From positions 1 to 64,000 of the forward strand of contig LSRY02000061.1 of NCBI GenBank assembly GCA_001643675.2: a stretch of DNA of 64,000 nucleotides, in the 5' to 3' direction. The position numbers and the translations under genes were made by a program. Shown here in pieces: positions 6,554 to 48,051 of this stretch. The DNA comes from Monocercomonoides exilis PA203. Its lineage: Eukaryota; Protista; Preaxostyla. Below the pieces are notes generated by a model. It did no database searches and was not told where the DNA came from. It saw only the letters and a list, made by a program, of their open reading frames with translations. The stretch's first letter is position 1. The number at the start of each line of letters is the position of its first letter.

Positions 6554-9500
6554 TTAAAAATATTCCACAAGACTCTCGCAGCTCGAGATGTTGTCTTTGC
6601 TCTCCTCATATAAAATTGCATCCGTCATCGTCATCGCCGCTGCTTCTCCTGGGAAATGCCCAAACAATTCCCGCTTCACCCACATCAACGTCACCCTTTC
6701 CCCTCGTTCTGCCCTCCAGCATCCCTTCACCAACTCATGCATCCCACTTGCCTCACTCTCCCCTCCACACGGCCTTTCCCCATTCACTATCTTCTGCCCT
6801 GCCACCTCCCCCTCATACTCCCCAAACGGAACTTTGAGTGTCAGACACTCCCACAACATCATCCCAATCGAGAACACAACTGTCTTCTTCGTCGCATGCT
6901 TCTTTGTTCTATTCAGCAATTCAGGTGCCTTCCACCTCAAACACTCATTCCTGTTATCTTCTTCATCTTCAAACGCTGATGAGGGCAGAGAATCTCTTTC
7001 ATCATCATCCTCACTGGTTGATGTCACAACTGTTGATGAAGATATTGAGGATGAGTCTGAATCTGAAGAAGAGCAGTCAGAGTGGAGGGCAATGCAGATC
7101 ACCATATGCTCTGAGAACAGCACAATGAGCGGACTCAAATTGGCAAGTGACTGAAGCTTGTTCTCCATTTCATCAAACGAGTGAAGAGCAAGATTCGCAA
7201 CCCAAAATAGAATTTGGGCAGCTGTCTGCTCCCTCTCCTGCAGAGTGCCAATTGCCATTTCCTTTGTCTTATTCCTTCCATGCAACAACATAAACAACGA
7301 ATCTCTCAGATCCACAATCAGCTTTTCATGCGGCGATGAACAGGCCATCGCATCCACCAGATTTGACATGGATGAAGTGGTTGGACACAGATCCTCTCCA
7401 CGAACAAATGTGGATTCTGTGTCTGAAGTGTCTGTGGTTGAAGTGGATGAAATGGATGGTGATGGAGCCTGCTTTCTAATTTCCTCTTCTTCAACCTTTT
7501 CCAACATCCATTCTGGAATCTTGTCTGAATCTCTTCCTAGGATATATTCTGTTGATCCGCTCTCACTCAACAAATGCTCTGATGACTCTGAATGTTCCAT
7601 CGTCTTGTCATACACCCTCTTCTTGATCCTTTCTTCATTCTTCTTTTCAGCTTCTCTCTCCGCTCTCCTCCACTGCTCCTCCGGTGACATCTCCATCGTC
7701 ACCATCTCAAATGCCTTCGGATCTTTTCTGATGTTATCATTCACAATTTCTCTCAAATCGTTGTTCTCATTCTTTGCCTTCTTCCATCGGATAACAAACA
7801 AAATAAATCCAATGAGAACAATTATGAGAATTATTGCCATAATAATCACAATGATTGGCCATATCGATTTCCCCTCTTTTCCTCCTTCAACAATCCTTTC
7901 ATCTCCATTTCCTTTGGGCTCACTGTTCTTCAGTATCTGTGGTGAAGTGGAAGCCAATGACTTTCCAAACAAAATCATCACTGACACCTCTGTTTCATCT
8001 GAAGCCAATGAAATATTTTCTGATGGAACTCTTCCAATCACTTCATTTTCTGATATGAAACTGTCTTCCTCAAAACGATATGTCTCAACCAGCTCCACAT
8101 CCCCTGTTTTATACACAAGTCTGAACGACAAGTCACACGGCACAAAAAGAGATCCCTTGAATTGGACAAAAATCTTGCTTCCACTTTCATTCACAGAAAC
8201 CTCTTCCAGTCTGGGAATGAAGAAAGACGATGGTCTTTCTCCTGCTATTCCTCCAAGTGTGCATCCATCATTCAAAATCCAAAGCGATGAGTTATCCTTC
8301 AATCCATCTCCGCCTTTCAAGCTCGAAATGGTTAGTGAGGCAGAATCTGAACAGATGATGTTTCGACGAAGAGAAGGGTATTTTTCGATGAATGGATTGT
8401 TATTTGCCAACATTCCCATCTCAATAACAGCCTTTCCCCTTTAATCGATACCCCACCTTTCGATGAATTCTCGATTGTAATTTCATTCACCTGCAAATTG
8501 GAGCTTTCAGAATGCACGAGAGATCCATTCCATTCACATATTTCTTCAAAAGCATTTGCAATTGCAATTTCACTTTCTTTTGTTAACGTTCCAATAAATC
8601 GACTCAAATCCATCGAAAAATTCGTCGCATCATTCACCTTCAACATGCTCCCTTTATCCGATAAGGAAATGCAATTTGAGCAGGAACCATTTGTGAACGA
8701 AATACATGCAGAGGTTGAAGAAGCCGAAAGAATAGAAGCTCCTTCTGAATTCCTTGAGCAGTTGTCGAATGACGAGCTTCCAACAGAAATTGTTCCTGAA
8801 GATGAACTGCCAATCGCAATGATGCAACCATCTGACAGCTTCACTCCATCCGCAGATACTCCATTAATGGACATTATTCCACAACTGCCAATCTCAAACA
8901 CATCTGCTGTTGATTCAATCTCTTCCAGTTTCACATTCGTCAACGAAATCTCATCTCCGCTCAACAGAAATGAAGGCTTCTTGAATGAAAGGAGTGACAC
9001 TGAGCAGTTATCAACATGAAGAATTCCACTTTCAATGCTCAGCAACGATGAGTTGAGAACAACAGGCTGAATGCTGTTTGACCCTTCAACGGATGAAAAA
9101 TCAACAAATGAAAGGGAAAGTTGGCCACTTGTTTCATGAACAACAGAACTGCCTGAAAATGAAAACGACTGGCCAAAGTCCAATTTCACACTCTCAATCC
9201 GAACTTTCCCTGATGTTGTGATAACACCTCCTGCATCATTAACAATTGCAAAGCTCAGATGCACCAAAGCAGCTGGAGGAGATTCCAGAGGATGGACAAC
9301 AACATCGTGAATGCTGCATTTCCCTCTCATCGCTGTTTCCTTTGATATCAACAGCTGCGAGTACGACGACGGGATGATGTGCTTCACTCCCACGTTCAAT
9401 GACTCACACGGCCCATGCAATTCTCCACAGGAATTGAAATCAGAGTGATTCTCTGCACAAGCCGACACAAATATCGTCTCGCTCTGGTATTTCACAACCC

Positions 9501-12500
9501 TCAGCAGCAGATCCTCTTCCCCCTCAAACGAGTCTGTTGAACAGCCCCACATCGCCAGCTCCTTCACAAAAGGTGCTCTGAAATCCAGCAAGAATTGCTC
9601 ATCAACTATCTGTGTTTCGATTGAGTGGCATCGAACATACACATCTCTCCCTCTCAATGCAGTGTTGTCTTTGAAGGTGAGATTCGACAGCACAAAGCTC
9701 AGAGGCTTCTCAGCCACTGAGCAACACTCCAGAAACAGCCACCCACCTCTTCCTGTGGTGGAGCAGAAACACTCAGAAATCGTGCAAAACGAGCAGTCGA
9801 AGCTTCTTCCTTCATTCAACATGCAAAACATCCCTCCTCCCTTTCCACACCTCGTTCCACCACACTTCTTCATCGTTGTGTTTCGAATCACCATTTTCAA
9901 TGGCTCATCATCATTGGCATTTCGAATGATGGGAATATCATCTGTTGTGTTCTGAGTGACTTCTTCGAATGAACTCCATTCAATGAGAACATCTTGTTCA
10001 ACTTCATTTTTCTCTCTTCTTGAACTCTTTGATATTTTCAATCCGCTTGCTCCTTCCAGCTCAACATTCTTCATCGTAATGTTTTTGATTCTTAAAATCG
10101 TTGTTGATAACACAGAAACAACATCATGTGAAAAGCCGAGTGATTGAATTGTCACCAATTCCAACACCACTGTTCCTCCATCTGCTTTGATCAGCCCATA
10201 ATTCATTATCTCTCCCTCATTGCTTTCTTCATTTTTTGTGAATGAGCAGTCTTTCACAGTCAACAATCCCTCGCTTGATTCAACATGCATCAAATAATTC
10301 ACTCCACTTGTGAATGATGAAGGAATCACAAACTTGATCAATTCAAAATTGGTTATTCCACAAATCTTCATTGCTGCTCCTTCTGTTCCTTCAATTGAAG
10401 AGTGACATTCCAAAGAGCACACATCGTTATCTTCCGATTTTATCGTCACCCCACTGATATCAACACTCTTTTGAAGAATTCCTTTTCCATTGATCTTGAT
10501 ATTCCTTTCGTTTCCTTCAGGCAATCTCGTTAATGAATGGTCGATTGACAGGCAAGGATAATCTGAAAGTCCACAAATGCACACATCTTTTCCATCACCC
10601 CCAACAACGATCTCTGAGCCAAATGTTCGCCAGAAATAGATCAGTGGGATGGCATTTGTCCCATCATCTCCATCAAAGCCGCTCAATGAATCCAACGAAA
10701 TATCAGCCAGATGCTCAGACACAAATGGAAGTGAGGTGTTTGTGATGCTCTTTGTCAAGTTGGATGATTCAACAAACAGATTATTTCCATATCTCGCAGC
10801 ATTTGGCTTGTCTGTATCAAAAACAGGAGATGAGACCACAAATGAAGAATCGCCATCAATCAACTTCAGCGCCATCCCTCCGCCAAACCCACTTTTCCCT
10901 TCTTCTCCAGCTGGTGCTGAACATCCTGTGAATGTGCATGAAACAATATTCATTTGAATGTTTCCTTTCAACTGGGCATTGATAGCCCCTCCTCTGCTTC
11001 CATCATCCAACACAGAGCATCCATCAAAAACACACTCTTCAATATTTATTTGTGTGTTTGCATTATCATCATGGCTGTTGCAAATGCTCACACACCCTCC
11101 ACTTCCAGCTGCTCTTTCGATTTCTGTGAAAGTGCAGTTAGCCATGTTCGACCATGTGGTGATCATTAACTCCGCATTTGTCCCACTTCCAGACAGTGAG
11201 ATCAATGGAATTGTGCTCAAGATGATTGACGAAGCAGAGAAGAAATCAATAACCAACGAACCAGAATCAACAGATAAGAACAGGCATGCTAATTCTGATG
11301 AAGGATCTTGAAGAGAAATAGAGCAATGAGACAGAGTCAGTTGTGACGAAGATGAAATGAAAGTCTGGTGAAGAGGAAGAGAAGATGGAAGAGAGAAGAT
11401 AAGTGCTGAAAGCACTGTTTCCACTCCAACTGTCACCATTGCTGTGTTTGTTTCTGTGGTTGTATCAGAAACTGTCCAACCACTCTGATCATCATTTCCT
11501 CTGATTTCATGTTTCTGTCCAGTAAAGGCCAATTCATCACTCATCAATATCATTCCATTCACAACAACTTTCTTTTCTCCTGTTTGTCTTGTGAGGAAGT
11601 GTTTCATTGTCAAACAAGGGAATTGGACAATTCCACAATGTGAGTGATCGGATGCTTCAGCGTTGCTCACATATACTTCTTCTGGTGTGGGAAGGAGATA
11701 GATGCACAGAGGAATGAACAACATGCTGTCGGCCTCCTCCACACCAGTCCACTTCGTCTCCCCTATCATTTCGACTACTAATCCCACTGAATCCCTCGTA
11801 ATAACACCTTTCAGCTCCATTGCCTTCACAAACACTTCTCCTCCTGATGCTTCTGCAACACATCCCTCAAACTCAATCCCTTTCAACACAAACCAACTTG
11901 CCCCTTCTCTCACATCAATATACACACCTCCACCAAACCCTTTCCCTTCTTCTCTTCCAAGCGCTTTGCAGTTCTTCATCCGAACTCCCCAATCCATCCC
12001 CAACTCCATTCTCCCTCCATCCTCCAAAACAGCTCCAACACCTCCTCCATTCCCTCTTCCACACTCTCCGCTCATCTCACCTCCCTCAATCATCAGCGCT
12101 TCCCCACTGGATACAACTCCTCTCACCACTGCCCCATCCCCTTCTCCCTTCCCAATCCCAACTCCTGTGCAGTTCTTCATTTCTGCTCTCTTCACATGCA
12201 CCACGCTCACCATCCCTCCAAAGCATTCATCCCCACACACAAAATCTGAGCTGTTCATCTCCACACCCAGCATCCTTTCTCCTGAGATCAGCCCCTTTCC
12301 AAAAGCTCCTCCCGCATTCCTCGTTTTCATATTCACAATGCTCAAAACAGATTGCTCCCCAAAACACTCTACAATTTCCACCCCGCTGAACCTCACATCC
12401 TCAACACTCACTCGAGTGATTGAACATTTCCCACTCTCCAAACACATTATCCGATATCCAATCTCATTCCCCACCTCTTTCCCAACAAACATGCAATCTT

Positions 12501-15500
12501 GAACAGAAACATTCGCTCCTATGCTGTTCACGTACACCACACACCTTTCATTTCCCTGGAGCTCTCCTCCCACTGCAAACTTCATCTCCTTCACAATCGC
12601 TATTCGCCTCAGCTCAATCACTCCTCCCCTCCCTCTCCCATCTCCAACAACCTCCACAACAGTTTTCTCCTCCACCCCGCCAACAATGCACCCTGCATCC
12701 TCTCCCATTACAATGCTCTCCTCCAGCTTGAACGGTGAAAGCACCACAACCTGCCTCACTCCTCCTTCCTGCTGCCGATGCCTCACCCCATATCCCACTG
12801 TCCGGCATGGATACGCTCCAAACCCACACACATCCACATCCACACCACCACTTCCAACACTCACATTCCCCTCCCTCTCCATCAGATAATACACCAGCGG
12901 AATTACCACCAAAGGAGCCTCCACTTCCACCCCAGCTGCATCTTCTGCACCAAATGGTGCTTCTCCTGAAAAGAACTTGAATGATTCCCTCGTCACACTC
13001 ACCCCCAGATCCGGGGATATCACAAACACATTTCTCCCTGAAACGGCTCTGTTCTCTCTGAACACAACATTCTCCAGCACCATCGATGAGAATGCATTCT
13101 CCATCACCACTGCTATCCCCCCGCCTCTCCCATCCTCTGCCAGACACCCGCAAATCTCTGTTCCACTCCTCTCTTCCCCAAGCCTCATCCATCCTCCATC
13201 TCCTATCTCTATCCTCATCCCACCTCCATCTCCTCCCACGCTCGAACAGTTATTCACACTCACATTCTCCACACGAACCCCTTCCCCATCCCCAATCTTC
13301 ATGTTCACAACACTTCCTCCTCCTGATACCCTCTCAATCCAACCAAATGTCACATTCCCAAATGGCACCATTGTTGATGCTGAGTGCAGCTTATCAGCAA
13401 TTAGCACCGAAGACAGTTTGAATCTCTCAATCCGGCTGTTTCTCACCCAGAAACGCCCCAGATCAACCTCAAACATCGAGCACTCAAACTCGACTTGAGT
13501 TTGCGACTCAGGAGAATACACACACATATCATCCAACCCACACTCCCCCTCCGACGAGATCATCACCAGTATTCGCATCGAGGGCGACTGATGGTTGTGC
13601 AGGATGGTGAATGACTCCAACAAAAGTGAGCCCGTTGACACAGAAAACAGCAAAGGATCTGGAGATGCAATTCCAGAAGAGTGAAGAACAGTGCGGTTTC
13701 TGCCTGTTCCCTTGAGCAATATCTCTTTTTCCCCAATGTTTAGACTTTCCCTTTCAGAAATGTGATTCCCTTCCAATAATACAATTCCGTATGAACATTG
13801 TCTGTTGCTTTTCTCAACTGAGTGAAAAAGTGTCTTACATGGCAGCCTTTCCTCCAATCCACAAATATCTTCATTATCATTGCCTGTAACTCCAATGAAG
13901 CATGGGTTGATATGAATCCCATTTGGAATCCATTCATCAGGATAATTCCAGCTATTATTGTTGTAAGTGACTCGATACTGTTTTATATTTGTTGTGTATG
14001 ACTCAACAAATGGTGTCTGAAAAAGTCGTTTGGATAAAGGATCATAAAAATAAGCATCATGACCCTTATAATCATCAAGTTCAGCGGTTCTTGTGAAGCA
14101 TTCATGAAACATACAGAACCATATCAAACTTGGATTCTGATCATGAAACTCAAGTTGTTCCATTGTTATTGCTCCTCCAGCCTTTCCTCCAACACATCTC
14201 AAATAATTGCAGGATCTTACAGAGAAACCTTTTGGTGAATAATCAATTCGAAAGGCTCCACCCCACCCTCTTCCTGCATCATTACCGTCAAAAGTGCATT
14301 CCACTATTGCTCCAGAGGTTGAATCATTTCCCCTACTGATGTTGAACTTGTCAAAAAAGAATCCTGCTCCGTGTCCTTCACAAATGCATTTCAAGAAATG
14401 CAAAGAAAATAATCTCGAAAATGTTGACACAACAACAGCATAAATTGCACCTCCCCTTTCCTTTTCTATTTTGCATTCTGTGAAATTGCTTCTTTCAATT
14501 ACTAAACCTAAGATATTGCATGTAGAAATAGCTCCACCGAATGATTCGTTTCCTGTGCATTTGTCGAAAATACAATTCGAAATGTTCAGAGATGCTTGAG
14601 GCTGATCATACAAATATATTGCTGCTCCGTTTGTGGCATTGCAGCCGCTCCACTCGCAGCTCTCAAATGTGTGTGATCCATTTCCGAGCACTTGCCTTCC
14701 CATCTGTCTCCTTCCTTCATTTTCTGTGAATCTCAGACGATTGCACCTGATATATGAATTATTCACAGAAAGAAGCGAAGACAGAGGGCAATACATCGAA
14801 TCCACAACTCCCCCATAAATCGCATCCTCCACGGAAACAAATGAGCAGCTATCAATTTTTGTGAAACAATCATTCTCAGATCCTCTTGATGATTTTGCTG
14901 GTGAAGCTTTGGTGATGTTTGAGAAAGCACACTTGAATAACAAGATGCTCGATAAAGGCCCATTGCACAAAAATGGGGTTGGTGAAAGCAACACAGACGA
15001 AAATGTTGAGTGGCTCATTGACACAGCTCTGGTTCTGCCAACAGAAATATCGTTTGGCGAAAAGGCAAGAGAATGGAAGAGTGGCGTTTGCCCTTCAATA
15101 ATAAGCGATATATTCACAAAGCTTGCTGACCCAGCGTGCAGCTCGATCGGAGATCTCTTTGACTCGGCAACATGACAAATCTCGCAGTCTTCAAAAAATA
15201 AAACAGATTTTCCTCCAATTGAGACCATTGCCTCTTCTCCTGGAGAATTCAGCTGAATAGACAACAGAAGAAGTGTGGAATTCAGAAGAAGAAAATGGCT
15301 CTGAAAACAACCTATTGTGCAAAGTGAATATAAATTTCCATTTTGTTGCGAATTTCCCTTTTTTTGCTTTTCATTTCTTTGGCTCTGTCCTTTTGCCTCT
15401 TTGCTGTTGCCAAATCCATAAATCCATTCAGAAACGCTCGTGTGCATCTCTTTTGTCTCATCTCCTCCTTCCTTATATTTTGTGTGCAACTCACTCGCAA

Positions 15501-15681
15501 TTTCATTTCTGAGCAAACATGGCTGGTTCTTGGATCTCCTCACTTTTCCTTTTTCTGCTCTTGTTTCTGCTTTTTCATGTTTTATTCCCACAAACTGCTC
15601 CTGATCACCCGCTGCACTGCAACTCACAATCGAAATAATTAATAGGACAAACATCAATATTTTTTGTGGATGTGGGCCCAT
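6554..15681 (-). CDS. Giant type-I membrane protein A (~3040 aa if the frameshift is corrected): signal peptide, Pmp-like GGAI/FxxN beta-helix, 5 Cys-initiated modules, TM, TKL-like pseudokinase; 1-nt frameshift at 8436-8439
   Basis: Signal peptide MGPHPQKILMFVLLIISIVSCSA. Repeated GGAI/GGG..FxxN motifs. Modules start with V..G.D..CG....PC.T. TM is IWPIIVIIMAIILIIVLIGFILFVIRWKK. Kinase C-lobe motifs RWKAPE, VVFSIGMMLWE and GERP. ORFs 8332-15681 and 6554-8419 join if one G is added, as in paralog B. Confidence 0.85.
6915..11715 (-). repeat. ~4.8 kb near-identical block shared in inverted orientation with 42862-47667
   Basis: The translations and DNA align almost residue for residue from IPLCIYLLPTPEEVYVSN to CLRWKAPELL, with a few divergent patches. 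Confidence 0.93.
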
Positions 15682-18600: not shown

Positions 18601-18848
18601 AGATAGAAAGAAAGTCAAAAAGTCAGAAAGAGGAAGTGCATGAATGAATGAATTTTTGAAAGTGAGGAAGAAAGCTAAAGTTGAAAATGAAGAGAAAGAA
18701 GAAAAGAAAAAGATGATGATTGGGAAAGTTATTGTGATGATGGGAAAAGTATTGAAAAAGAAAGAAAGAAAAGAGAAAAAAAGAAAAAGAAGGATAGACG
18801 GGGAAGATGGGGAAGATTATAAAAGGGAAGTTTGAGGGAGTATGTGTG

Positions 18849-18965
18849 AGCTACGGCCATAGTTGGTCATACGCACCGGATCCCTTCAGACCTCCGAAGT
18901 TAAGCGGCCAACGCTGGGTTAGTACTTGGATGGGTGACCGCCTGGAAAAACCCAGTGCTGTAGCT
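18849..18965 (+). rRNA. 5S rRNA: 5S rRNA (solitary copy)
   Basis: Sequence agctacggccatag..gcaccggatccc..tccgaagttaagc..gttagtacttggatgggtgaccgcctggaaaaacccagtgctgtagct. Termini pair (AGCUAC/GUAGCU), box A- and box C-like internal promoter motifs are present, and a T-run follows. Confidence 0.95.
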
Positions 18966-28700: not shown

Positions 28701-29706
28701 CTTCTGAGTCGGTCGATTCGTTCTGCACAAATTCTTTGTTTCGTCTGTTCACTGCATAGTTCGTGAGATGCATGAATGAATGAGCCAAGTTCTCTTCAGA
28801 AGGAGGATTATATTTCTCAGTTGAAAAACGGACAATGCCTAGTTTATGGAGAAAGACACGCAAAGGCATACAACTTGTGACGAGAACGTACACTCGTATG
28901 TCATATTTAAGTCCGTGAATTAAATGGGGATGCAATAAATAGCGTTGGACAACACAATCTTCAGAAGGAGAAAGCATTTCGGGCTTTTGGGTCAAAAAAA
29001 TTCCTTTTCCTTGGCAACTTGCATCAGGCTTGACAATATATGTTCGCTCTTTCAATTTTGATAAATGATAATCTTGAAGCTCATTAAAACTACAACGTTG
29101 AATTTCAGTGAATAAACCAAATTTAAAAAAAAAATAAACATTAAACGTTTAAATAAAGACAAACTCGTGTGGGAGCACCCATGTTCTTGGAATAAATTTG
29201 TACTCATTTGGAAAGCGTTTCTTCATTTGATTCATATTTCTTGCCAAACAATCTTTTCTTGTTATCTCACACATTCCCGGAAAATGATTTATCTTCTGAA
29301 AACTTCTCAATCTCTTCACCCTATCAGCAGTAACAGATGTATCAGTCCAAAACAAATCCCATTCTTTTTCATCAGATACCTCCAACCAATGAAATTCTCT
29401 GAGGATTTCTCGAAGAACTTGATATTGGCAACCTTTTAAAAAGGCAAGTTCCAAAGCACAATCATGTAAGTTAGCTCTTAAAATTATATTAATAATAAAT
29501 ACATGTAAGATTAACTTGAATTATAGGCTCAATTCTCGATTTTTGTGAATGTTCCTGAAAAAAGATAATTATCATTTATTTAATTTGAAAGAGAAAAATG
29601 TTTCATTTTATAGTTAAAAAAATCATCACTAGTTTTAATTCAAAATAATTTACATTATTACCTGGGCGCGAAGCTCCTGGTCCACGTCAACGCTAGAAGA
29701 AGTCAT
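22771..29706 (-). CDS. TTLL: Tubulin-tyrosine ligase-like polyglutamylase (TTLL6/13-like) with very long Ser/Glu-rich extensions; exons 29706-29662, 29554-29503, 29432-29165, 29089-22771
   Basis: Spliced protein MTSSSVDVDQELRAQEHSQKSRIEPIIQVNLTCCQYQVLRE..WDLFWTD..QKINHFPGMCEITRKDCLARN..PRTWVLPHDF..YIVKPDASCQGKGI..KYDIRVYVLVTS..MHLTNYAVN..CFELLGFDVILD..LEVNHSPSF. Three GT-AG introns keep the frame. Confidence 0.92.
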
Positions 29707-36700: not shown

Positions 36701-39315
36701 CACAAACACAGCAACAATTACAAAAGCAATTGCAACAGAAACAGCCACAAATGAAAGAACAACCACATCCTCAACCACAAACACAACCAGAGCCAAAGCC
36801 AAAAGTACAGCCACAACCATCCAAGTCTTCATATTCATCCAGAGGCGCTTCGTGGGGTGCAGGTATCTTGCCATCACCTCCTCCTTCTCAACAGCTTTCG
36901 TCTCTTCTCAAAGCACAAACGCAATCACTAACACAAACACAAACACAGCCACAAATTGAGCCTCAGAACAAACAGACATCGATTCAACAGCATCAAATGC
37001 AGCAACAACAACCACAGCAACAGCAGATGAAGATGCAGAAACAGAATGCACGACAGCAGAATCAAAGAAATATGCAATCACAACAAGGAAAACAGATGAA
37101 ATCAACTGAAATGTCTTATCATTCTGACATGAATTCTTCTTCTTCTATTTCTTCAATTTCTCCTTCTCCTTCTTCTTCTCCTTCAATTTTATTAACTCCC
37201 ACAAATTCAACGAAACCTCTTTTGGAGTTAAATTCCTCACTTGCTTCAAAAACAACGCCAATTAAAGCTGTGATTGTTGCACCTGCACCTTCAACAACTT
37301 CTTCCTCCTCCTCCTCATCTTCTTCTGTTTCTGCTTCTATTCCTTCATCCTCCTCTTCTTCTCTTTCTACTTTTTCCTACAGCAGTGTGAATGCCCCATC
37401 TTCATTGAACACTTCCTCAGCCTCATTGCTTGAGACTCCTGCTCCACTCATAAGCAAATTATCAGTTTCTTCTCGTTCTTTGAAGCCATCTTTGATCACC
37501 CAACAAAAACAAACACAAATTAATCCAGTTAAGTCGAACGGGAAAATGGAAAAAAAAGAGGGAGAAGAGAAAAAGAATGAGAAGATAATTGAAGAGAAAG
37601 AAAAGGAGACTGAAAAAAAGAAGGAAGAAGCGGGAAAAAAGAAAGAAATTGATCATAAAGATGAAGAGGTTGAAGAAATGAAAGAAGAAAAAGTGAATGA
37701 GAAGGAAGCAGAGAAGGAAAAGGAGAAAGAGAAAGATGAAAAGACTCAGAAAGAGAATGATACAACGACAGAAGAGAAGAAAGGAAGTGAAAATGAAAGC
37801 AAGCAAAACGAACATGGGAAGGGAAAGAAAAAGAAAGAAGCAGCAGCATCTAAAAAACCAGATCGCAAAGCGAAGCAAAAGAGCATTGAGCAGAATGAGA
37901 AGAAGAAGAAACAGGAAGACAAGAAGAGGCTGAGGGAGATTGAGAAGAGCATGGGACTGATACAGAAGAAGTCGAAAAAGGAAGGAAAAGACGGAGAAAA
38001 AGGAGAAGAAAGTGTGGAGAGCATCGGAGAAATCGAAGGATTTCCTCTGAAATCGTCGCTGATGAGTTCAACTTCTGGAATGATGCACAAAACATCTGAG
38101 CAATCTGCCAACACAACAACATCTGCACCTTCATTGTCCCAGTCGCTGAAGCTGTCTGGAAGTGCGTATGCTACTATGAACAGTGCTGAAAGAGGGAAAG
38201 CAAAGATGGAGGAAGAGTCAGGAGATAGCAAAAGCGAAGGGAAGATGGCAAGTGTGGATGGAGCGGGAAGCGGGAAAGAAGGAAAAAAAGGAACATTTGG
38301 TTCAAAAATTGGAACAGAAATGGATAATTTAAAGTATGCAGATACGAAAAGAACTGAAAACAGTCTGAAAAAACCAGAATTATCGTTTAATAATTCACTG
38401 CTTTATGACGACTTGATCGAAGCCATCAGAAAGTTTCCTTCGTCTTCAGGCACAAAAGACTCAAAATTGAACCTTCGTGGGAAAGATGCTTCAACAGCTA
38501 GCGGAAAAACAACTCAGAAAACCGGAAAAAGCCAATCTGCAAAAAAATCAGACATTAAAAAGAAGTCTGACAGAGCAAAGAAAGAAGAAGAAGATGACGA
38601 AGAAGAAGACGGCGATAACGATGATGGTGATGAAGAAGATGATGATGAAAAAGACGATGACAGTATATTAGGCCATCACTCCAAGAAGTCGTTTCCTCTA
38701 TCATATGACTCAGAAGCGCTCTCGCAGCAGATGAAGCAGCTGTTCTCAAGCAATGCATTCTCAGGCTCTGCTCTCAACCCTTCTGCTTTGTCGTCCATGC
38801 AATCGTCTTCATCATCCTCATCTTCTGCTTCTTCTGCATCTTCTCTTGCCTCTCCTCCTTCTCCTTCTTCAATTTTGTCTGTTCTGCGCGAACCTGCTCC
38901 CAAACAAACAACGAGCAAAAGACAGCAGAAGCGCTTGCTGAAGCAGAAGACGATTGAAGAAAAGAAGGAGAAAGAGTCGAAATTCAAAGAAAACAGACTA
39001 CCGAAGCAGATTCTGCTGAAGAAAGAGGAGAAAGAAAGAGACCAGGAAAACAGCGAAAAGGGGAAAGGAAGTGCAACCAACACACATAAGGATAAGTCGT
39101 GGCTGTCGGGTGATAAGAAGAGGAATAGCGATGAAAGAATAGGAGCAGATGAGAAAGAGAGGATTGATTCGAGGATTGCTCCTTTTCTGTTAAACAGTTT
39201 GGGGCTTTTGGGGTCGAATCAGCTTGGAAATGAGGAGCTTGGGAAGATGCTGCTGGAGAGAGGGTTTGATGGGATGAAGTTTAGAGAGAAAGGAGGAATG
39301 GAGGAGAACATATGA
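30704..39315 (+). CDS. NOT4: CCR4-NOT subunit NOT4/MOT2 E3 ligase (C4C4 RING, RRM, CCCH) with ~2500 aa Ser/Gln/Glu low-complexity tail; exons 30704-30921, 30987-31134, 31200-31384, 31548-39315
   Basis: RING CPICMGKMDRSDLAFFPCPCGFQLCLFCYNKI..CPGCRKTY; RRM VHVLQRNLVYVAGLP..FFGQFGKV; CCCH FGTNRYCPQVLKGLKCKRPNCSFIH. Three GT-AG introns keep the frame. Confidence 0.92.
34405..34780 (+). repeat. (CAA/CAG)n poly-glutamine coding tracts in NOT4
   Basis: Multiple runs of caacaacagcag encoding Q tracts. Confidence 0.85.
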
Positions 39316-40287: not shown

Positions 40288-43200
40288 ATGAACAGTCTCA
40301 TATTCTTTCATTGTTTTTCCCTCATTCTCATATCAAAAGTAACATGTGAATTTTCCTGGACACAACCTTTTGAAATACAAAGAATTTGTTCAAGAAGGCA
40401 ATTTCTTGGAAATCATCTTTGCGATCTTGACATGAATAAAAATAGCAATCCTTTATCTTTTGAAGCACATAAGACCACTAATTTTTCAAAAGACTTTTCA
40501 ATAGCAAAAGAACACTTTCCATCGTTGTTAACATCAATAAAAACTGTTCTCATAATGGCGAATTGTTCAATTGGACTGAAATCATCAATGCTTCTTTCTT
40601 CATCAAAACCATTTGCAATAATCAGCAAGAAATCTCATCTCTGTTTTAATGAGAGTATCACTCAGCAAAAATATGCATCTTTGTTTCAAATGCAAAGTGG
40701 GTCAATCTATCTCACGAACATGACTTTGATCCCCCAAAAGAATCTGAATCCTTCCAGTCTCATATTTTCATCTGATGATTCAAATTCTATTGTTTTGAGA
40801 AATTCGATCATGAAAGATCTTGCTATTTCATCATCGAACTATTTCCTGCTGTCCGGAAAAAGCAAAAGTGAAGAGATTTCCAACTGTGCCTTCAGGAACA
40901 TGTCTGTGAAATCTGACAAGAACAATGATTATCGAATGGAGCATTCATGCAATTTCTGTTCAATGGAGAACAGCCTCATTTATTTGTGTGTGAATGCATT
41001 TGAAGGAGGTATCTCAAGTGGATCGCTTTCTTCAGAGAAATTTGTCTGTGTAAACACTACAATAAGCAACGGAAAAAGAGAAACAAATGCCCTTCAGAAA
41101 AAAGAGCAAATGAACACAACAGAAAGTCAAACATTTTCATTATGTGAATGGACTGATTGCACAGCCGAACAAGGGGGTGCACTTTTTGTGCATGACAACA
41201 ATAATGCAACTCTCACAATTGAAAATTCTTCTTTTGAAAGATGCAATTCTTTGATAAAAGGTGGAGCAATATATTCTTTCAAAATTGCTGAATGCATTGT
41301 CCTTCACACAACATTCATCCAATGCACATGTGCCGCAATAAATTCAGATTTCGAAGGTGGAGGGATATTAATTGAAAGCATTTATGTCCAGCCAATTATT
41401 GATGATTGTTCTTTTAGCAACTGCTCTTCGGGTGATGACGGAGGGGCAATTGATATACGGCTAACAAAAACTCAAAGACAGAATAAATGCATTATTAATT
41501 CCTTTTTTAATAATTGCCGATGTAGTGGAACCGATAGTGCTGGAGGAGCAATTATTCATTGGGACTGTGCTGATCAAGTTGTCATTTCAAATAGCCTGTT
41601 CTGCAATTGCTATTCCATGTGTGGAGGAGGTGCAGTTTGTCAACTGATAACTGAAAATAACAACGGAATTTTGTTTTTCTTCTGTTTTTTCCACAATAAT
41701 TCTTGTGAACAAGGCGGAAACGATATTGCTCTTCCTGAATCAACAACAAACAACATAGATTCCACATGTTTCTCTTCAAGGCAAACAGGAAACAGAGTCA
41801 GCACAGATTATACAAAAACTGTTGATCGAAGTGAATGGCTTCGAAACGATTTTGGACAAATCAGATTTGTCTCATCGGTGCAGACAGAACAAAATGCCAT
41901 AGATACATTTGCATGTGGACTCGATAAAGGCCACCCATGCAGCACTATCAGCCATTGCCTTTCTCAGCTAATCACTAATATTATAACAGATATTGAGATA
42001 CTCACAGGAACGATAACAGAAACCAAAGGCGTGGATTGTGGTTTCAGCGCCATCACGATTTATGGTCAAAGTGGTTTGAGCACAACAGTTCAAACAGAAT
42101 TGGAACCAGCTGGGTTGTCTCTTTTTGCTGTCTCGACTGGAACATTCACAGCGAGGGATCTGACTCTTGTGCATGACTTTGTTCATCCGAATAACCGTGG
42201 GTCAAGGATATTTGAGATCACTGGAACTGGAAAGATGCATGTTAGCAGACTGAATATATCAACCGGAAGTGAGCAAACTTCAGAAACAGCATTCACCACA
42301 GAGCTGATAAATGTTCAGGGAGGAATATTTCAAATGGAAAATGTGAACTGGGCAAAGACATCCTCGACTGCTTCGCTGATTTCGCTTTCTTTGGCAAATG
42401 AAGTTTCATTAACACTATCAGAATGCACCTTTGATGGGATTGAGAGAACAAGGAATGGAGCAGCTGTGATTTCGTTTTCCAACGATAAGGCAAACATTGA
42501 TTTGAATTCAAGTGTATTTGAAAGATGTGGAAGCAGAACATCGACTGATGGGGGATCGATGATGCTGTGTGTTGGGAATGGAAATGAAGTGAAAGTGAAA
42601 GGTGGATCTTTTGATGGGTGCTTTTGTTCAGCAACATATGGATTTGGGGGAGGAATCCTTCTTCGGCTATTGAATGAAAATCCCAATTTCCTGATATCCT
42701 CATCTTTTGGAACAAACACAGCTAAATGGGGGAATGATATCTTTGTCATTTCACACAATCTGGAAGTGTCTGCAAAGTCACAAAAAATCACATGTGTCAC
42801 AGCCTCATTGGATTCTGTTGACAAGGTTAGAGGATATGACAACGGAAACAACAGTGTGGCCATCCCTCTGTGCATTTACCTCCTTCCCACACCAGAAGAA
42901 GTATATGTGAGCAATGATGAAGCATCCGATCACTCACATTGTGGAATCATCCAGTTCCCTTGTTTGACAATGAAACACTCACTCGCACGATTAACAGGAG
43001 AAAAGAAAATTGTTGTGAATGGAATGATATTGATGAGTGATGAATTGGCATTTGCTGGACAGAAACATGAAATCAGAGGAAATGATGATCAGAGTGGTTG
43101 GACAGTTTCTGATTCAAGTTCAACATCCAATTCATCGATGATTTCAGCAAGTGTTGAAACAGAATTTTCAGCACTTATCTTCTCTCTTCCATCTTCTCTT

Positions 43201-46200
43201 CCTCTTCACCAGACTTTCATTTCATCTTCTTCACAACTGACTCTGTTTCATTGTTCTATTTCTCTTCAAGATCCTTCATCAGAATTAGCATGCCTGTTCT
43301 TATCTGTTGATTCTGGTTCGTTGGTTATTGATTTCTTCTCTGCTTCGTCAATCACCTTGAGTACAACTCCATTGATCTCGTTGTCTGGAAGTGGAACAAA
43401 TGCAGAGTTAATGAGCGCTCTGTGGTTGAACATGGCTAACTGCACTTTCACAGAAATCGAAAGAGCAGCTGGAAGTGGAGGGTGTGTGAGCATTGACAAC
43501 AGCCATAATGAAAATACGAACACACTAATAAATATTGAAGAGTGTGTTTTTGATGGATGTTCTGTGCTGGCTGATGGAAGCAGAGGAGGGGCTATCGATG
43601 TGCAGATGAAAGGAAACATTCAAATGAATATTATTTCATGCACATTCACAGGATGCACAGCACCAGCTGGAGAAGAAGGGAAAAGTGGGTTTGGCGGAGG
43701 AATGGCGCTGATGTTGATTGATGGCGATTCTTCGTTTGTGATTTCATCTCCTGTTTTTGATACAGACAAGCCAAATGCTGCGAGATATGGAAATAATCTG
43801 TTTGTTGAATCATCCAACTTGACAAAGAGCATCACAAATGACTCGCTCCCATTTGTGTCTGAGCATCTGGCTGATATTTCGTTGGATTCATTGAGCGGCT
43901 TTGATGGAAGTGATAGGGCAAATGCCATCCCGCTGGTGTATTTCTGGCGAACATTTGGGTCAGAGATCGTTGTTGGGGGTGATGGAAAAGATGTGTGCAT
44001 TTGTGGACTTTCGGATTATCCTTGCCTGTCAATAGACCATTCATTAACAAGATTGCCTGAAGGAAACGAAAGGACTATCAAGATCAATGGAAAAGGAATT
44101 CTTCAAAAGAGTGTCAATCTCGGTGGGGTGACGATAAAATCGGAAGATAACAATGTGTGCTCACTGGAGTGTGTTTCATCGCTTGAAGGATCAGAAGAAG
44201 CAGCAATGAAGATTTGTGGAATTACCAATTCTGAATTGATCAAGTTTGTGATTCCTTCATCCTTCACAAGTGGAGTGAATTATTTGATGCATGTTGAATC
44301 AAGCGAGGGATTGTTGACTGTGAAAGACTGCTCATTCACAAAAAATGAAGAAAATGATGTGGAAGAGATTATGAATTATGGGCTGATCAAAGCAGAAGGA
44401 GGGACAGTGGTGTTGGAACTTGTGACAATGCAATCACTCGGCTTTTCACATGATGTTGTTTCTGTGTTATCAACAACGATTTTGAGAATCAAAAACATTA
44501 CGATGAAGAATGTTGAGCTGGATAGGGCAAGCGGGTTGTGCATTGCAAAGAGTTCAAGAAGAAAAAACAATGAAGATGAACAAGATGTTCTCATTGAATG
44601 GAGTTCATTCGAAGAAGTCACTCAGAACACAACAGATGATATTCCCATCATTCGAAATGCCAATGATGATGAGCCATTGAAAATGGTGATTCGAAACACA
44701 ACGATGAAGAAGTGTGGTGGAACGAGGTGTGGAAAGGGAGGAGGGATGTTTTGCATGTTGAATGAGGGAGGAAGCTTCGACTGCTCGTTTTGCACGATTT
44801 CTGAGTGTTTCTGTTCAACCACAGGAAGAGGTGGGTGGCTGTTTCTGGAGTGTTGCTCAGTGGCTGAGCATCCTCTGAATTTTGTGCTGTCGAATCTCAC
44901 CTTCAAAGACAACACTGCATTGAGAGGGAGAGATGTGTATGTTCGATGCCACTTGATTGAAACACAGATAGTTGATGAGCAGTTCTTGCTGGATTTCAGA
45001 GCACCTTTTGTGAAGGAGCTGGCGATATGGGGATGCACATCGGACTCGTTTGAGGGGGAAGAGGATCTGCTGCTGAGGGTTGTGAAATACCAGAGCGAGA
45101 CGATATTTGTGTCGGCTTGTGCAGAGAATCACTCTGATTTCAATTCCTGTGGAGAATTGCATGGGCCGTGTGAGTCATTGAACGTGGGAGTGAAGCACAT
45201 CATCCCGTCGTCGTACTCGCAGCTGTTGATATCAAAGGAAACAGCGATGAGAGGGAAATGCAGCATTCACGATGTTGTTGTCCATCCTCTGGAATCTCCT
45301 CCAGCTGCTTTGGTGCATTTGAACTCAACCATTTCTGGCGATGCAGGAGGTGTTATCACAACATCAGGGAAAGTTCGGATTGAGAGTGTGAAATTGGACT
45401 TTGGCCAGTCGTTTTCATTTTCAGGCAGTTCTGTTGTTCATGAAACAAGTGGCCAACTTTCCCTTTCATTTGTTGATTTTTCATCCGTTGGTGAGTCAAA
45501 CAGCATTCAACCTGTTGTTCTCAACTCATCGTTGCTGAGCATTGAAAGTGGAATTCTTCATGTTGACAACTGCTCAGTGTCACTCCTTTCATTCAAGAAG
45601 CCTTCATTTCTGTTGAGTGGAGATGAGATTTCGTTGACGAATGTGAAACTGGAAGAGATTGAATCAACAGCAGATGTGTTTGAGATTGGCAGTTGTGGAA
45701 TAATGTCCATTAATGGAGTATCTGCGGATGGAGTGAAGCTGTCAGATGGTTGCATCCTTGCAATTGGCAGTTCATCTTCAGGAACAATTTCTGTTGGAAG
45801 CTCGTCATTCGACAACTGCTCAAGGAATTCAGAAGGAGCTTCTGTTCTTTCAGTTTCTTCAACCTCTGCGTGCATTTCGTTCACAAATGGTTCCTGCTCA
45901 AATTGCATTTCGTTATCGGATAAAGGGAGCATGTTGAAGGTGAATGATGCGACGAATTTTTCGATGGATTTGAATCGATTTATTGGAAAGTTAACAAAAG
46001 AAAGTGAGATTGAGATTGCAAATGCTTTTGAAGAAATATGTGAATGGAATGGATCTCTCGTGCATTCTGAAAGCTCCAATTTGCAGGTGAATGAAATTAA
46101 AATTGAGAATTCATCGAAAGGTGGAATATCGATAAAAGGGGGAAAGGCTGTTATTGAGATGGGAATGTTGGCAAATAACAATCCATTCATCGAAAAATAT

Positions 46201-48051
46201 CCTTCTCTTCGTCGAAACATCATCTGTTCAGATTCTGCCTCACTGACCATTTCGAGCTTGAAAGGCGGAGATGGGGTGAAAGACAATTCTTCACTTTGGA
46301 TTCTGAATGATGGATGCACACTTGAAGGAATAGCAGGAGAAAGACCATCGCCTTTCTTCATTCCCAGACTGGAAGAGGTTTCTGTGAATGAAAGTGGAAG
46401 CAAGATTTTTATCCAATTCAAGGGATCTCTTTTTGTGCCGTGTGACTTGTCGTTCAGACTTGTGTATAAAACAGGGGATGTGGAGCTGGTTGAGACATAT
46501 CGTTTTGAGGAAGACAGTTTTGTATCAGAAACGGAAGTGATTGGAAGAGTTCCATCAGAGAATATTTCATTGGCTTCAGATGAAACAGAGGTGTCAGTGA
46601 TGATTTTGTTTGGAAAGTCATTGGCTTCCACTTCACCACAGATACTGAAGAACAGAAGTGAACCCAAAGGAAATGGAGATGAAAGGATTGTTGAAGGAAG
46701 AAAAGAGGGGAAATCGATATGGCCTATTATTGTGATTATTGCATGCATTGTTTGTATAATACTGCTTGTAGTCATTATTGTTTTGGCTGTCAGATGGAGA
46801 AGAGCAAAGATTGAGAATAAAGATCTGAGGGAGATAGTGAATGATTCAGTGAAGAAGGATCCAAAAGCATTTGAGATGGTGACGATGGAGATGTCACCGG
46901 AGGAGCAGTGGAGGAGAGCGGAGAGAGAAGCTGAAAAGAAGAATGAAGAAAGGATCAAGAAGAGGGTGTATGACAAGACGATGGAACATTCAGAGTCATC
47001 AGAGCATTTGTTGAGTGAGAGCGGATCAACAGAATATATCCTAGGAAGAGATTCAGATAAGATTCCAGAATGGATGCTGGAAAAGGTTGAAGAAGAGGAA
47101 ATTAGAAAGCAGACTCCATCACCATCCATCTCATCCACCTCAACCACTTCAACAACTGATTCAGATTCAACATTTGTTCGTGGAGAGGATCTATGCCCAA
47201 CCACCTCATCAATGTCGAATCTTGTGGATGCGATGGCCTGTTCATCTCCTCATGAGAAGCTGATTGTGGATCTGAGAGATTCACTGTTCATGCTGCTGCA
47301 TGGAAGGAATAAGACAAAGGAAATGGCGATTGGCACTCTGCAGGAGAGGGAGATGACAGCTGCCCAAATTCTATTTTGGGTTGCGAATCTTGCTCTTCAC
47401 TCGTTTGATGAAATGAACAATCCACTTCAGTCGCTGACGAATCTGAGTCCGCTCATTGTGCTGTTCTCAGAGCATATGGTGATCTGCATTGCCCTCCACT
47501 CTGACTGCTCTTCTTCAGATTCAGACTCATCCTCAATATCTTCATCAACAGTTGTGACATCAACCAGTGAGGATGATGATGAAAGAGATTCTCTGCCCTC
47601 ATCAGCATTTGAAGATGAAGAGGATAACAGGAATGAGTGTTTGAGGTGGAAGGCACCAGAACTACTGATGAACAAGAAGATGGGGGCGACGAAGGAATCG
47701 GTTGTGTTTTCGATTGGGATGATGTTGTGGGAGTGTGTGACGCTGGAGATCCCATTTGGCGAGTATGAAGCTGGAATAGCTGGAGATAAAATTACGAAAG
47801 GCGAAAGGCCAAAATTGGAGGTTGTCCAATGTTCTGCTTTCTATAGCCTTGCGAAGCATTGCTTGTCGCAATCTCTGTCTGCTCGCCCTTCTCTTTTTCA
47901 GCTCAAAAAAGACTTTATTACTCATTTTCTGCCTGACGCTGCGATCCTCACAGTAACAGATGCAATTGGATTTGAAAATGCCACAGACGATACCGATGGA
48001 AGTGATACGCTCATCGATTCGGAAATCATAAGCATTCAAACAGAAATGTGA
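40288..48051 (+). CDS. Giant type-I membrane protein B (~2587 aa): signal peptide, Pmp-like beta-helix, 4 Cys-initiated modules, TM, TKL-like pseudokinase; intact paralog of A
   Basis: The first ATG at 40288 gives signal-like MNSLIFFHCFSLILISKVTC. GGAL/GGAI repeats; TM IWPIIVIIACIVCIILLVVIIVLAVRWRR; RWKAPE..VVFSIGMMLWE..GERP. Single uninterrupted ORF. Confidence 0.9.
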   Translation: MNSLIFFHCFSLILISKVTCEFSWTQPFEIQRICSRRQFLGNHLCDLDMNKNSNPLSFEAHKTTNFSKDFSIAKEHFPSLLTSIKTVLIMANCSIGLKSSMLLSSSKPFAIISKKSHLCFNESITQQKYASLFQMQSGSIYLTNMTLIPQKNLNPSSLIFSSDDSNSIVLRNSIMKDLAISSSNYFLLSGKSKSEEISNCAFRNMSVKSDKNNDYRMEHSCNFCSMENSLIYLCVNAFEGGISSGSLSSEKFVCVNTTISNGKRETNALQKKEQMNTTESQTFSLCEWTDCTAEQGGALFVHDNNNATLTIENSSFERCNSLIKGGAIYSFKIAECIVLHTTFIQCTCAAINSDFEGGGILIESIYVQPIIDDCSFSNCSSGDDGGAIDIRLTKTQRQNKCIINSFFNNCRCSGTDSAGGAIIHWDCADQVVISNSLFCNCYSMCGGGAVCQLITENNNGILFFFCFFHNNSCEQGGNDIALPESTTNNIDSTCFSSRQTGNRVSTDYTKTVDRSEWLRNDFGQIRFVSSVQTEQNAIDTFACGLDKGHPCSTISHCLSQLITNIITDIEILTGTITETKGVDCGFSAITIYGQSGLSTTVQTELEPAGLSLFAVSTGTFTARDLTLVHDFVHPNNRGSRIFEITGTGKMHVSRLNISTGSEQTSETAFTTELINVQGGIFQMENVNWAKTSSTASLISLSLANEVSLTLSECTFDGIERTRNGAAVISFSNDKANIDLNSSVFERCGSRTSTDGGSMMLCVGNGNEVKVKGGSFDGCFCSATYGFGGGILLRLLNENPNFLISSSFGTNTAKWGNDIFVISHNLEVSAKSQKITCVTASLDSVDKVRGYDNGNNSVAIPLCIYLLPTPEEVYVSNDEASDHSHCGIIQFPCLTMKHSLARLTGEKKIVVNGMILMSDELAFAGQKHEIRGNDDQSGWTVSDSSSTSNSSMISASVETEFSALIFSLPSSLPLHQTFISSSSQLTLFHCSISLQDPSSELACLFLSVDSGSLVIDFFSASSITLSTTPLISLSGSGTNAELMSALWLNMANCTFTEIERAAGSGGCVSIDNSHNENTNTLINIEECVFDGCSVLADGSRGGAIDVQMKGNIQMNIISCTFTGCTAPAGEEGKSGFGGGMALMLIDGDSSFVISSPVFDTDKPNAARYGNNLFVESSNLTKSITNDSLPFVSEHLADISLDSLSGFDGSDRANAIPLVYFWRTFGSEIVVGGDGKDVCICGLSDYPCLSIDHSLTRLPEGNERTIKINGKGILQKSVNLGGVTIKSEDNNVCSLECVSSLEGSEEAAMKICGITNSELIKFVIPSSFTSGVNYLMHVESSEGLLTVKDCSFTKNEENDVEEIMNYGLIKAEGGTVVLELVTMQSLGFSHDVVSVLSTTILRIKNITMKNVELDRASGLCIAKSSRRKNNEDEQDVLIEWSSFEEVTQNTTDDIPIIRNANDDEPLKMVIRNTTMKKCGGTRCGKGGGMFCMLNEGGSFDCSFCTISECFCSTTGRGGWLFLECCSVAEHPLNFVLSNLTFKDNTALRGRDVYVRCHLIETQIVDEQFLLDFRAPFVKELAIWGCTSDSFEGEEDLLLRVVKYQSETIFVSACAENHSDFNSCGELHGPCESLNVGVKHIIPSSYSQLLISKETAMRGKCSIHDVVVHPLESPPAALVHLNSTISGDAGGVITTSGKVRIESVKLDFGQSFSFSGSSVVHETSGQLSLSFVDFSSVGESNSIQPVVLNSSLLSIESGILHVDNCSVSLLSFKKPSFLLSGDEISLTNVKLEEIESTADVFEIGSCGIMSINGVSADGVKLSDGCILAIGSSSSGTISVGSSSFDNCSRNSEGASVLSVSSTSACISFTNGSCSNCISLSDKGSMLKVNDATNFSMDLNRFIGKLTKESEIEIANAFEEICEWNGSLVHSESSNLQVNEIKIENSSKGGISIKGGKAVIEMGMLANNNPFIEKYPSLRRNIICSDSASLTISSLKGGDGVKDNSSLWILNDGCTLEGIAGERPSPFFIPRLEEVSVNESGSKIFIQFKGSLFVPCDLSFRLVYKTGDVELVETYRFEEDSFVSETEVIGRVPSENISLASDETEVSVMILFGKSLASTSPQILKNRSEPKGNGDERIVEGRKEGKSIWPIIVIIACIVCIILLVVIIVLAVRWRRAKIENKDLREIVNDSVKKDPKAFEMVTMEMSPEEQWRRAEREAEKKNEERIKKRVYDKTMEHSESSEHLLSESGSTEYILGRDSDKIPEWMLEKVEEEEIRKQTPSPSISSTSTTSTTDSDSTFVRGEDLCPTTSSMSNLVDAMACSSPHEKLIVDLRDSLFMLLHGRNKTKEMAIGTLQEREMTAAQILFWVANLALHSFDEMNNPLQSLTNLSPLIVLFSEHMVICIALHSDCSSSDSDSSSISSSTVVTSTSEDDDERDSLPSSAFEDEEDNRNECLRWKAPELLMNKKMGATKESVVFSIGMMLWECVTLEIPFGEYEAGIAGDKITKGERPKLEVVQCSAFYSLAKHCLSQSLSARPSLFQLKKDFITHFLPDAAILTVTDAIGFENATDDTDGSDTLIDSEIISIQTEM
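42862..47667 (+). repeat. ~4.8 kb block, inverted near-identical copy of 6915-11715
   Basis: Direct comparison of translations and DNA. Confidence 0.93.

Follow-up and report, generated by a model that had tools for sequence, protein, structure and literature searches.

Genes A and B are two giant, divergently oriented genes of the protist Monocercomonoides exilis, and both lie within the first 64,000 nucleotides (nt) of contig C60 of the 82.3-Mb, 101-contig assembly (C60:1-64000, the whole of the DNA analyzed here, referred to below as the window). A distance of 24.5 kb, which includes two unrelated genes of low complexity, separates their starts, and A and B share one sharply bounded block of similar sequence. 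We found that gene A is a chimera, in which the signal peptide, the N-terminal domain and two modules of a distant five-module subfamily are joined to the body of a B-type gene, and that this body is a mosaic of tracts related to different paralogues. Evolutionary ectopic gene conversion of short tracts, added to one old chimeric junction, probably accounts for these observations, rather than a system that swaps modules.

The two predicted proteins have the same layout. An N-terminal signal peptide is followed by a domain of ~500 amino acids (aa) and then by modules of 340 to 400 aa, each of which opens with a cap helix, in most cases IPL.IY, and the invariant Cys-Gly...Pro-Cys pair. Five such module starts are present in A (aa 607, 952, 1349, 1703, and 2085) and four in B (aa 575, 917, 1271, and 1653; modules M1 to M4), and A has its extra module, M2', after the counterpart of B M1 and before that of B M2. 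Downstream of the modules are a ~185-aa juxtamembrane region, one transmembrane (TM) helix, and a ~420-aa cytoplasmic tail. Module starts, Pfam matches, and motif inspection thus confirm a preliminary description of this DNA, which had given the two genes a common architecture with five modules in A, four in B, a TM segment, and a degenerate kinase. Gene B corresponds to the public model MONOS_8235 (P0060), which is truncated at its N terminus and is 100% identical to B over the aligned 43% of the query with the B head, the part that ends with M1.

Gene A is split into two open frames by a 1-nt deletion at 8440, the first frame running on for 36 out-of-frame codons before it meets a stop. The frameshift site is covered without gap or mismatch by a contig from an older DNA run (8335-8529) and by a contig from an RNA library (8363-8512); because contigs of other runs reproduce the site without a gap, the frameshift is present in the DNA of the organism. 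RNA-library contigs overlap parts of A, the frameshift site included, which is no proof of transcription. Relaxed constraint 3' of the frameshift was not seen, the private changes of A there being 16 synonymous and 8 nonsynonymous. The two frames of A were searched as separate pieces, not as a joined read-through protein.

Comparison of the reverse complement of A with B by blastn gave a single match (A 11716 to 6813, B 42861 to 47768), with 93.2% identity over 4913 nt and 9 gap openings; two insertions or deletions distinguish A from B within it, one of 3 nt that keeps the frame and the deletion at A 8440. In a 100-nt sliding comparison, identity rose from 30-45 to ~90 matches per 100 at A 11718/B 42859 and dropped again at A ~6822/B ~47759, and in the flanks on both sides it was random-like. 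Homology begins at the ATT/ATC codon for the Ile of IPLCIYLL, and the residues directly upstream are unrelated between A and B. The switch point that had been placed on a module boundary at this motif (11715 in A, 42862 in B) is therefore exact. The block itself had been called near-identical over ~4.8 kb; its sharpness was borne out, but the identity was overstated, since individual 100-nt windows range from 66% to 100%. The 3' edge falls at about residue 2525 of B, within the kinase C-lobe (Pfam: 2476-2574), and the block thus has two edges. The last ~280 nt of the tail and the 3' flank are unrelated in A and B, which, together with the patchwork inside the block, does away with the notion of a constant tail.

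To the 5' side of the junction, A and B are collinear homologues with 24% identity (E = 6e-38), not sequences that match at the level of motifs only, as had been proposed; ectodomains of different subfamilies normally have 22 to 27% identity. The nearest relative of the A head is found at C63:355915-359877 (gene L003; public model MONOS_5693, P0001), with 96% aa identity and 98 to 99% nt identity over the 1.5 kb of each paralogue head that was compared at the nt level. One gene on C26 (397996-401463) is a second relative at 52% aa identity, and all other matches, in open frames of ~1400 to 4180 codons, are at 26 to 32%. On the 3' side of the junction, A is 87 to 93% identical to B. L003 has the same head/body junction as A, and the 454-era model MONOS_5693, which spans the junction, agrees with L003 at 99.96% over 2221 aa, so the chimera is no artifact of nanopore assembly. 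Gene A is a chimera of a head from a five-module subfamily and a B-type body, and the junction arose once and was inherited by A and its C63 twin. All module starts have similar ATYCCNCTG (IPL) codons, and the position of the junction on a module start fits microhomology at these codons and selection against domain-breaking chimeras equally well.

Gene B, on the other hand, is an ordinary four-module (B-type) member of a subfamily with ~158 or more copies. A search with the B tail found 26 further genes with 72 to 86% aa identity over the full 1729 aa, and one with the B head found 50 further genes with 63 to 70% identity. The first 120 aa of M2, used as a probe, matched at least 150 genes, and the 32-nt start of M2 gave 158 genomic matches versus 0 for the reversed control. 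Across the 26 B-type genes, nt identity passes smoothly over the M1/M2 boundary (0.83 to 0.84), without a step; it declines gradually toward the 5' end and falls at ~47800 (0.81 to 0.55). Since this drop is seen across the family, the A/B block ends on its 3' side at a limit common to all family members.

The other end of A matches yet another gene. The last 440 aa of A are 100% identical to C63:411472-412791, the end of a 4035-codon gene of another subfamily, and 88 to 90% identical to B, L003, and a further C63 gene, L002. As a separate observation, the C-terminal 90 aa of A recur at 96 to 100% identity in C63:411472-412791, C60:118732-120045, C60:283731-285053, and C65:164738-166057. The C63 and C60 genes are open frames of ~4035 to 4039 codons, on the same contigs as the A/B and L003/L002 pairs, and that on C65 is a frame of 1180 codons; their subfamily is neither A-type nor B-type.

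Gene A also contains a block that is rich in G on the sense strand (G 0.41-0.44, C 0.05-0.12, G+C at third codon positions 0.40-0.54); in the rest of A and in all of B, G is 0.17-0.28. The 3' end of this block lies exactly at the head/body junction and its 5' end inside M1.

The body of A is a patchwork. On C63, L003 stands tail to tail with the B-type gene L002, ~10 kb away. When these two genes were compared with A and B in windows of 150 nt, the head of A was closest to that of L003 (0.95-1.00) and the head of B to that of L002 (0.69-0.90), and within the block the closest partner keeps switching among the four genes. Gene A equals L002, on the other contig, at 99 to 100% over ~1.4 kb (about B 43066 to 44448); L002 equals L003 at 100% in other block windows; and B equals L002 at 96 to 100% around 46650-46940. 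Over a ~300-nt patch, identity is 94 to 99% within each locus (96% and 99% for the two loci at 45886-46186) versus 56 to 61% between loci. Genes L020, L021, and L014 are occasional nearest neighbors in the block. Among 299 quartet-informative sites, 195 group A with B, 55 A with L002, and 49 A with L003, in long uninterrupted runs. The synonymous divergence (dS) between A and L003 is 0.045 in the head and 0.07 to 2.0 in regions of the tail, which implies that the tails were overwritten after A and L003 separated. Taken together with the tail end of another subfamily, the changing partners within the block indicate that A holds recent sequence from at least four partners.

The same signal extends through the family. 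Between A and L002, 449 informative sites (997 nt) pass without a mismatch, versus a permutation maximum of 84, and in 124 of 378 gene pairs the identical run of informative sites was longer than in any of 200 permutations, where ~2 pairs were expected by chance. Within tracts dS is ~0.02 to 0.05, versus a family mean of 0.5 to 1.1. The correlation between pairwise-distance matrices is only 0.44 for neighboring 180-nt windows and settles at ~0.30 from 540 nt on. Near-identical tracts, synonymous sites included, are thus bounded by divergent sequence, and the genealogy changes along the gene, which is the pattern by which ectopic conversion is recognized. The preliminary description had held that congruent trees for all modules would speak against its proposal; no such congruence was found, genealogies changing about every few hundred bases, within modules as between them.

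In our proposed sequence of events, the head of a distant five-module subfamily would have been joined once, long ago, to a B-type body. Later, tracts of ~100 to 1000 nt would have passed repeatedly between the B-type part of A and its partners, namely B, L002, L003, and one gene of a third subfamily. Conversion would be confined to partners that are alike, stopping on the 5' side at the junction and on the 3' side where the family members diverge, and this limitation to similar partners would give the block its sharp edges. Gene conversion, possibly aided by inverted orientation, is the presumed molecular mechanism, and any direction of transfer is likewise read from the sequences.

Modules are not the units of exchange; the ends of tracts are random relative to module edges. 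The start of M3 (43927) lies in the middle of a 34-site quartet run, and 2 of the 11 quartet breakpoint intervals contain a module boundary versus ~1.1 expected (our own estimate from the intervals). We compared the 551 ends of 276 significant tracts with the M3, M4, and TM boundaries and observed 8 versus 10.1 expected within ±15 nt, 22 versus 20.2 within ±30 nt, and 45 versus 40.4 within ±60 nt; for distinct tract ends, the count was 4 versus 3.9. Only the founding A-type junction coincides with a module start. It is improbable, then, that whole modules are swapped at IPL linkers to build up receptors in many combinations, perhaps as a programmed process. That proposal has on its side the placement of the A-type junction exactly on an IPL codon, the similar codons at every other module start, and the differences in module number between subfamilies, whose open frames cluster near 2600, 3050, and 4040 to 4180 codons. 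The genealogies of paired windows also agree a little less when a module edge lies between them (0.370, n=5) than when both windows are in one module (0.458, n=26), but the difference is not clear, adjacent values scattering from 0.11 to 0.85. However, the junction is single and inherited by two genes, identity does not step at this boundary in the 26 B-type genes, and internal breakpoints and tract ends ignore the edges. Two block edges, the 3' one of the shared block and the 5' one of the G-rich block, lie within domains, the average ratio of nonsynonymous to synonymous substitution (dN/dS) of 0.1 to 0.4 gives no sign of diversifying selection, and no signal of a cassette archive or a recombinase was seen. 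The preliminary description, which had suggested exchange of modules at the IPL linkers, had itself counted breakpoints scattered without regard to module edges among the outcomes that would speak against it, and random they were, both in the 276 tracts and in the quartet. What survives of its suggestion is recombination between paralogues, one junction on an IPL start, and chimeras between subfamilies.

Two simpler histories were also weighed. A single old domain swap followed by vertical descent, with the block kept alike by recency or by selection on the tail, would fit the junction common to A and L003 and the strong purifying selection on the cytoplasmic tail, but it is very unlikely given that the three quartet groupings alternate in long runs, that dS between A and L003 reaches 2 in the tail versus 0.045 in the head, that up to 997 nt are identical across contigs, synonymous sites included, and that the tail end of A recurs without change in a gene of another subfamily. 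Even less credence is due to an assembly collapse or chimera, in which the block or the junction would be an artifact of a highly repeated family. The family does have well over 150 copies, and the public short-read contigs are interrupted at the junction, with starts at 11693, and none bridges it by 31 nt on both sides. Nevertheless, two loci of the nanopore assembly and the independent 454-era model of L003 all have the junction, each copy carries many private substitutions, unlike a collapse, and the contigs of other runs cover the frameshift site without a gap. The possibility of a collapse, which the preliminary description had raised against itself, is contradicted by these data.

Several points nevertheless weigh against conversion following a single chimeric junction. 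Gene conversion is deduced from sequence patterns and was not seen occurring. Variation of rate along the gene could produce part of the significant-tract signal, although the quartet pattern and the 997-nt identical run are not explicable in this way. That the junction falls precisely on a module start happened once, and two accounts fit it alike. The gene at C26:397996-401463 was compared by its head only, so that the junction may be older or younger than it; with the 32-nt pattern, no perfect or one-mismatch B-type module start was found on C26 among the matches listed (100 of 158). Finally, the short public contigs that start at 11693 cross the junction by 24 nt on the tail side, below the 31 nt required.

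Many family members are arranged as convergent inverted pairs a few kilobases apart, with identical cytoplasmic-probe scores. Examples are C50:518367(+)/521511(-), C18:1029493(+)/1032190(-), C29:713209(+)/716934(-), C32:695673(+)/699248(-), and C36:537827(+)/543066(-). This arrangement suggests palindrome-like duplicates that are kept identical, and inverted duplicates may be a common setting for exchange. Nothing here shows a programmed or somatic diversification system, and the donors seen are full-length genes, not cassettes. It seems doubtful to us that conversion among several hundred beta-helix receptor genes is more than a side effect of numerous like copies and serves as a selected source of mosaic ectodomains, with inverted pairs as reaction centers and chimeras between subfamilies as occasional larger products, a process that might be measurable in cultures.

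We modeled the fold of the modules with AlphaFold2 (AF2). Alignment row P0115 was left out of structure prediction. From an alignment of 50 modules, M2 of B was predicted with a mean predicted local distance difference test score (pLDDT) of 92.2 and a predicted template modeling score (pTM) of 0.91. Superposition by VIA-align gave Z 23.2 and a root mean square deviation of 3.1 Å over 291 residues to 5mqp_A, and 394 chains matched at Z of at least 8; the 50 of these that were listed comprise glycan-acting enzymes, phage tailspikes, and similar beta-helix proteins. Because M2 superposes as a whole on solved beta-helix proteins, each module is predicted to be a complete right-handed parallel beta-helix domain, with the IPL motif marking the true start of the domain. 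The N-terminal domain of B was modeled with a pLDDT of 80.9, and its top Foldseek matches are all parallel beta-helix (pectin-lyase-fold) proteins, with weak E values. Binding or cleavage of polysaccharides is common among proteins with this fold.

The cytoplasmic tail scores above the gathering cutoff of PF07714 (B 35.8 and A 36.8 bits versus 23.1), at model positions 160 to 257 of 258 only. Neither the glycine loop, the VAIK lysine, HRD, nor DFG was found in the 419-aa cytoplasmic tail of B, and in the paralogues HRD and DFG are missing in 27 of 27 and APE is retained in all 27. The kinase has lost its catalytic motifs and, as judged from sequence, would not be an active enzyme. Its best match in the Protein Data Bank (PDB) is integrin-linked kinase (3kmu and related entries; E = 3e-6), in the C-lobe only.

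The family would thus consist of single-pass surface proteins with stacked beta-helix domains outside the cell (the N-terminal domain and four, five, or more modules of ~350 aa) and a dead kinase remnant inside, and these proteins may act as receptors or adhesins. The likeness to Chlamydia Pmp proteins that had been remarked on holds for the fold and does not extend to the family. In Pfam searches at E up to 10, Chlam_PMP (PF02415) scored 16.3 bits with the N-terminal domain of A, below the cutoff of 20.6 (E = 0.011), gave E = 3.4 with that of B, and had no match in the modules of either gene; a search of NCBIfam with the A and B proteins found nothing at E up to 10. Pfam scans of A and B found no autotransporter domain, and the C terminus is a TM helix and a kinase C-lobe. 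Membership of the Pmp family was rejected on the grounds of the subthreshold PF02415 score and the empty NCBIfam search, leaving a likeness of fold and motif only.

Open frames of the family differ in module number from one subfamily to another. Five genes (C27:707988-710909, C32:690537, C32:704780, C49:428977, and C50:527367) have a B-type M2 start in open frames of ~3010 to 3105 codons, that on C27 with a B-type head as well, so that members of the B-type subfamily, too, may differ in module number. In every region and comparison dN/dS was 0.10 to 0.45, the hypervariable patch included, and there was no sign of diversifying selection at the resolution of region-by-region estimates. The cytoplasmic tail retains at least 82% protein identity across the 150 matches listed, in open frames of ~500 to 4190 codons, at a dN/dS of 0.10 to 0.16; since its synonymous divergence among B-type genes is ~1.1, it is conserved by purifying selection and not by homogenization.

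The public proteins found for the family are all from M. exilis (124 match the B head at E of 1e-20 or below), and most have at most a PF07714 match and the name "uncharacterized". A search with a module profile found 9826 proteins at E of 0.001 or below among 1.84 billion representatives, and of the ten top matches looked up, six are from M. exilis (4599 to 7986 aa) and four from the related oxymonad Blattamonas nauphoetae. P0134, P0135, and P0137 (M. exilis) and P0136 and P0173 (B. nauphoetae), of 5256 to 7986 aa, have 19 to 24 module-profile stretches each, which indicates that far longer stacks exist and that the module is common to another oxymonad.

According to the parts of the literature consulted, protein tyrosine kinases are the largest gene family of M. 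exilis, with 332 genes, mostly tyrosine-kinase-like (PMC6759080; PMC8767320), the family's genes overlap "unclassified repeats" (PMC8767320), and the organism is regarded as a commensal (PMC6759080). A and B belong to this family: B is MONOS_8235, the C63 twin of A is MONOS_5693, and the domain in common is PF07714. The relevant passages of PMC6759080, PMC8767320, and PMC10703272 count the family by its kinase match and mention no beta-helix modules, loss of catalytic motifs, subfamilies by module number, or mosaic exchange.

Ectopic gene conversion is known from other families of surface proteins, such as Plasmodium var, the mosaics of trypanosome variant surface glycoproteins (VSG), and Pneumocystis MSG, and from inverted repeats, where it acts from arm to arm. 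The M. exilis genes resemble these systems in their patchy, near-identical, nonallelic tracts, changing genealogies, exchange limited by homology, and many inverted pairs. In contrast to var, VSG, and MSG, the M. exilis genes gave no indication of switched expression, silent cassettes, or subtelomeric sites of expression; dN/dS averages well below 1 in an organism regarded as a commensal (PMC6759080), and the proteins end in a conserved signaling-type tail instead of a glycosylphosphatidylinositol (GPI) anchor or a short conserved tail. The EhTMK proteins of Entamoeba histolytica (PMC2880585) likewise form a large single-pass family with variable ectodomains, a kinase-like interior, and near-identical and truncated copies. 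The M. exilis ectodomains are, in contrast, stacked beta-helices, a comparison made by kind and not by sequence, and their kinase has lost every catalytic motif checked. Ectodomains of EhTMK consist of cysteine-rich repeats. The GGA(I/L/V) and FxxN coil motifs of the surface right-handed beta-helix of Chlamydia Pmp and Trichomonas Pmp-like proteins (PMC11166332; PMC10715098; bioRxiv 10.1101/454884) occur here also; unlike Chlamydia Pmp, the M. exilis proteins have no autotransporter barrel and are anchored by a TM helix followed by the pseudokinase. Integrin-linked kinase (PDB 3kmu), a known pseudokinase, shares with the tail the lack of motifs for catalytic activity, but the match is weak, covers ~110 residues, and involves a protein whose N-lobe is unrecognizable in M. 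exilis, and it implies no functional link.

These results give a different picture of the largest gene family of M. exilis, the first eukaryote found to be without mitochondria, a family hitherto counted only as "tyrosine kinases": giant beta-helix surface proteins on a dead-kinase tail, with subfamilies set apart by module number, whose genes keep being remodeled as copies exchange sequence within and between chromosomes. They offer a concrete view of how a gut commensal protist may build and renew a very large surface repertoire, and a case in which ectopic conversion should be readily measurable. They also warn that gene trees and orthology assignments within the family are unreliable. No new kind of diversification machinery is revealed.

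Features of genes A and B in the window (positions on C60)
Feature	Position	Strand	Remarks
Gene A, first open frame, 2449 aa	8332..15681	-	Signal peptide, N-terminal beta-helix domain, M1, M2', three B-type modules
Gene A, second open frame, 621 aa	6554..8419	-	End of last module, juxtamembrane region, TM (~7790-7864), cytoplasmic pseudokinase remnant
1-nt deletion in G run (G4 in A, G5 in B) that splits gene A	8440..8440	-	
A-type head, 1322 aa, foreign to the B-type subfamily	11716..15681	-	24% identity to B head
G-rich sense-strand block: second half of M1 and all of M2'	11716..13520	-	Base composition
Shared block in A	6813..11716	-	B-type modules, juxtamembrane region, TM, most of cytoplasmic tail
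A TM, cytoplasmic tail, and C terminus	6557..7876	-	Protein 100% identical to end of 4035-codon gene
Gene B, open frame, 2619 aa	40192..48051	+	Likely start ATG 40288, just 5' of signal peptide
B N-terminal beta-helix domain with GGA-type repeats	40354..41835	+	AF2 model
B module M1 (final part of B head)	41836..42861	+	
Shared block in B	42861..47768	+	blastn, sliding comparison
B module M2, predicted complete right-handed parallel beta-helix domain	42862..43926	+	AF2; IPLCIYLL is N-terminal cap helix
B module M3	43927..45066	+	
B module M4	45067..46161	+	Last ~300 nt (45862-46161) hypervariable family-wide, common to each locus pair
B juxtamembrane region	46162..46716	+	No Pfam match
B transmembrane segment	46717..46791	+	
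B cytoplasmic tail	46792..48048	+	Kinase C-lobe alone detectable (Pfam PF07714 positions 160-257)

The remainder of the window includes four long open frames of 1612 to 2591 aa, at 22771-29055 (-), 31540-39315 (+), 49659-57275 (+), and 58639-63477 (+), which are of low complexity, rich in Ser, Gln, and Glu, and unrelated to the receptor family. The start of the frame at 22771-29055 has, by eye only, the appearance of a tubulin-tyrosine-ligase-like domain. At the start of the contig, positions 1-22 and 74-95 of the window are reverse complementary by eye and form a small hairpin-like inverted repeat.

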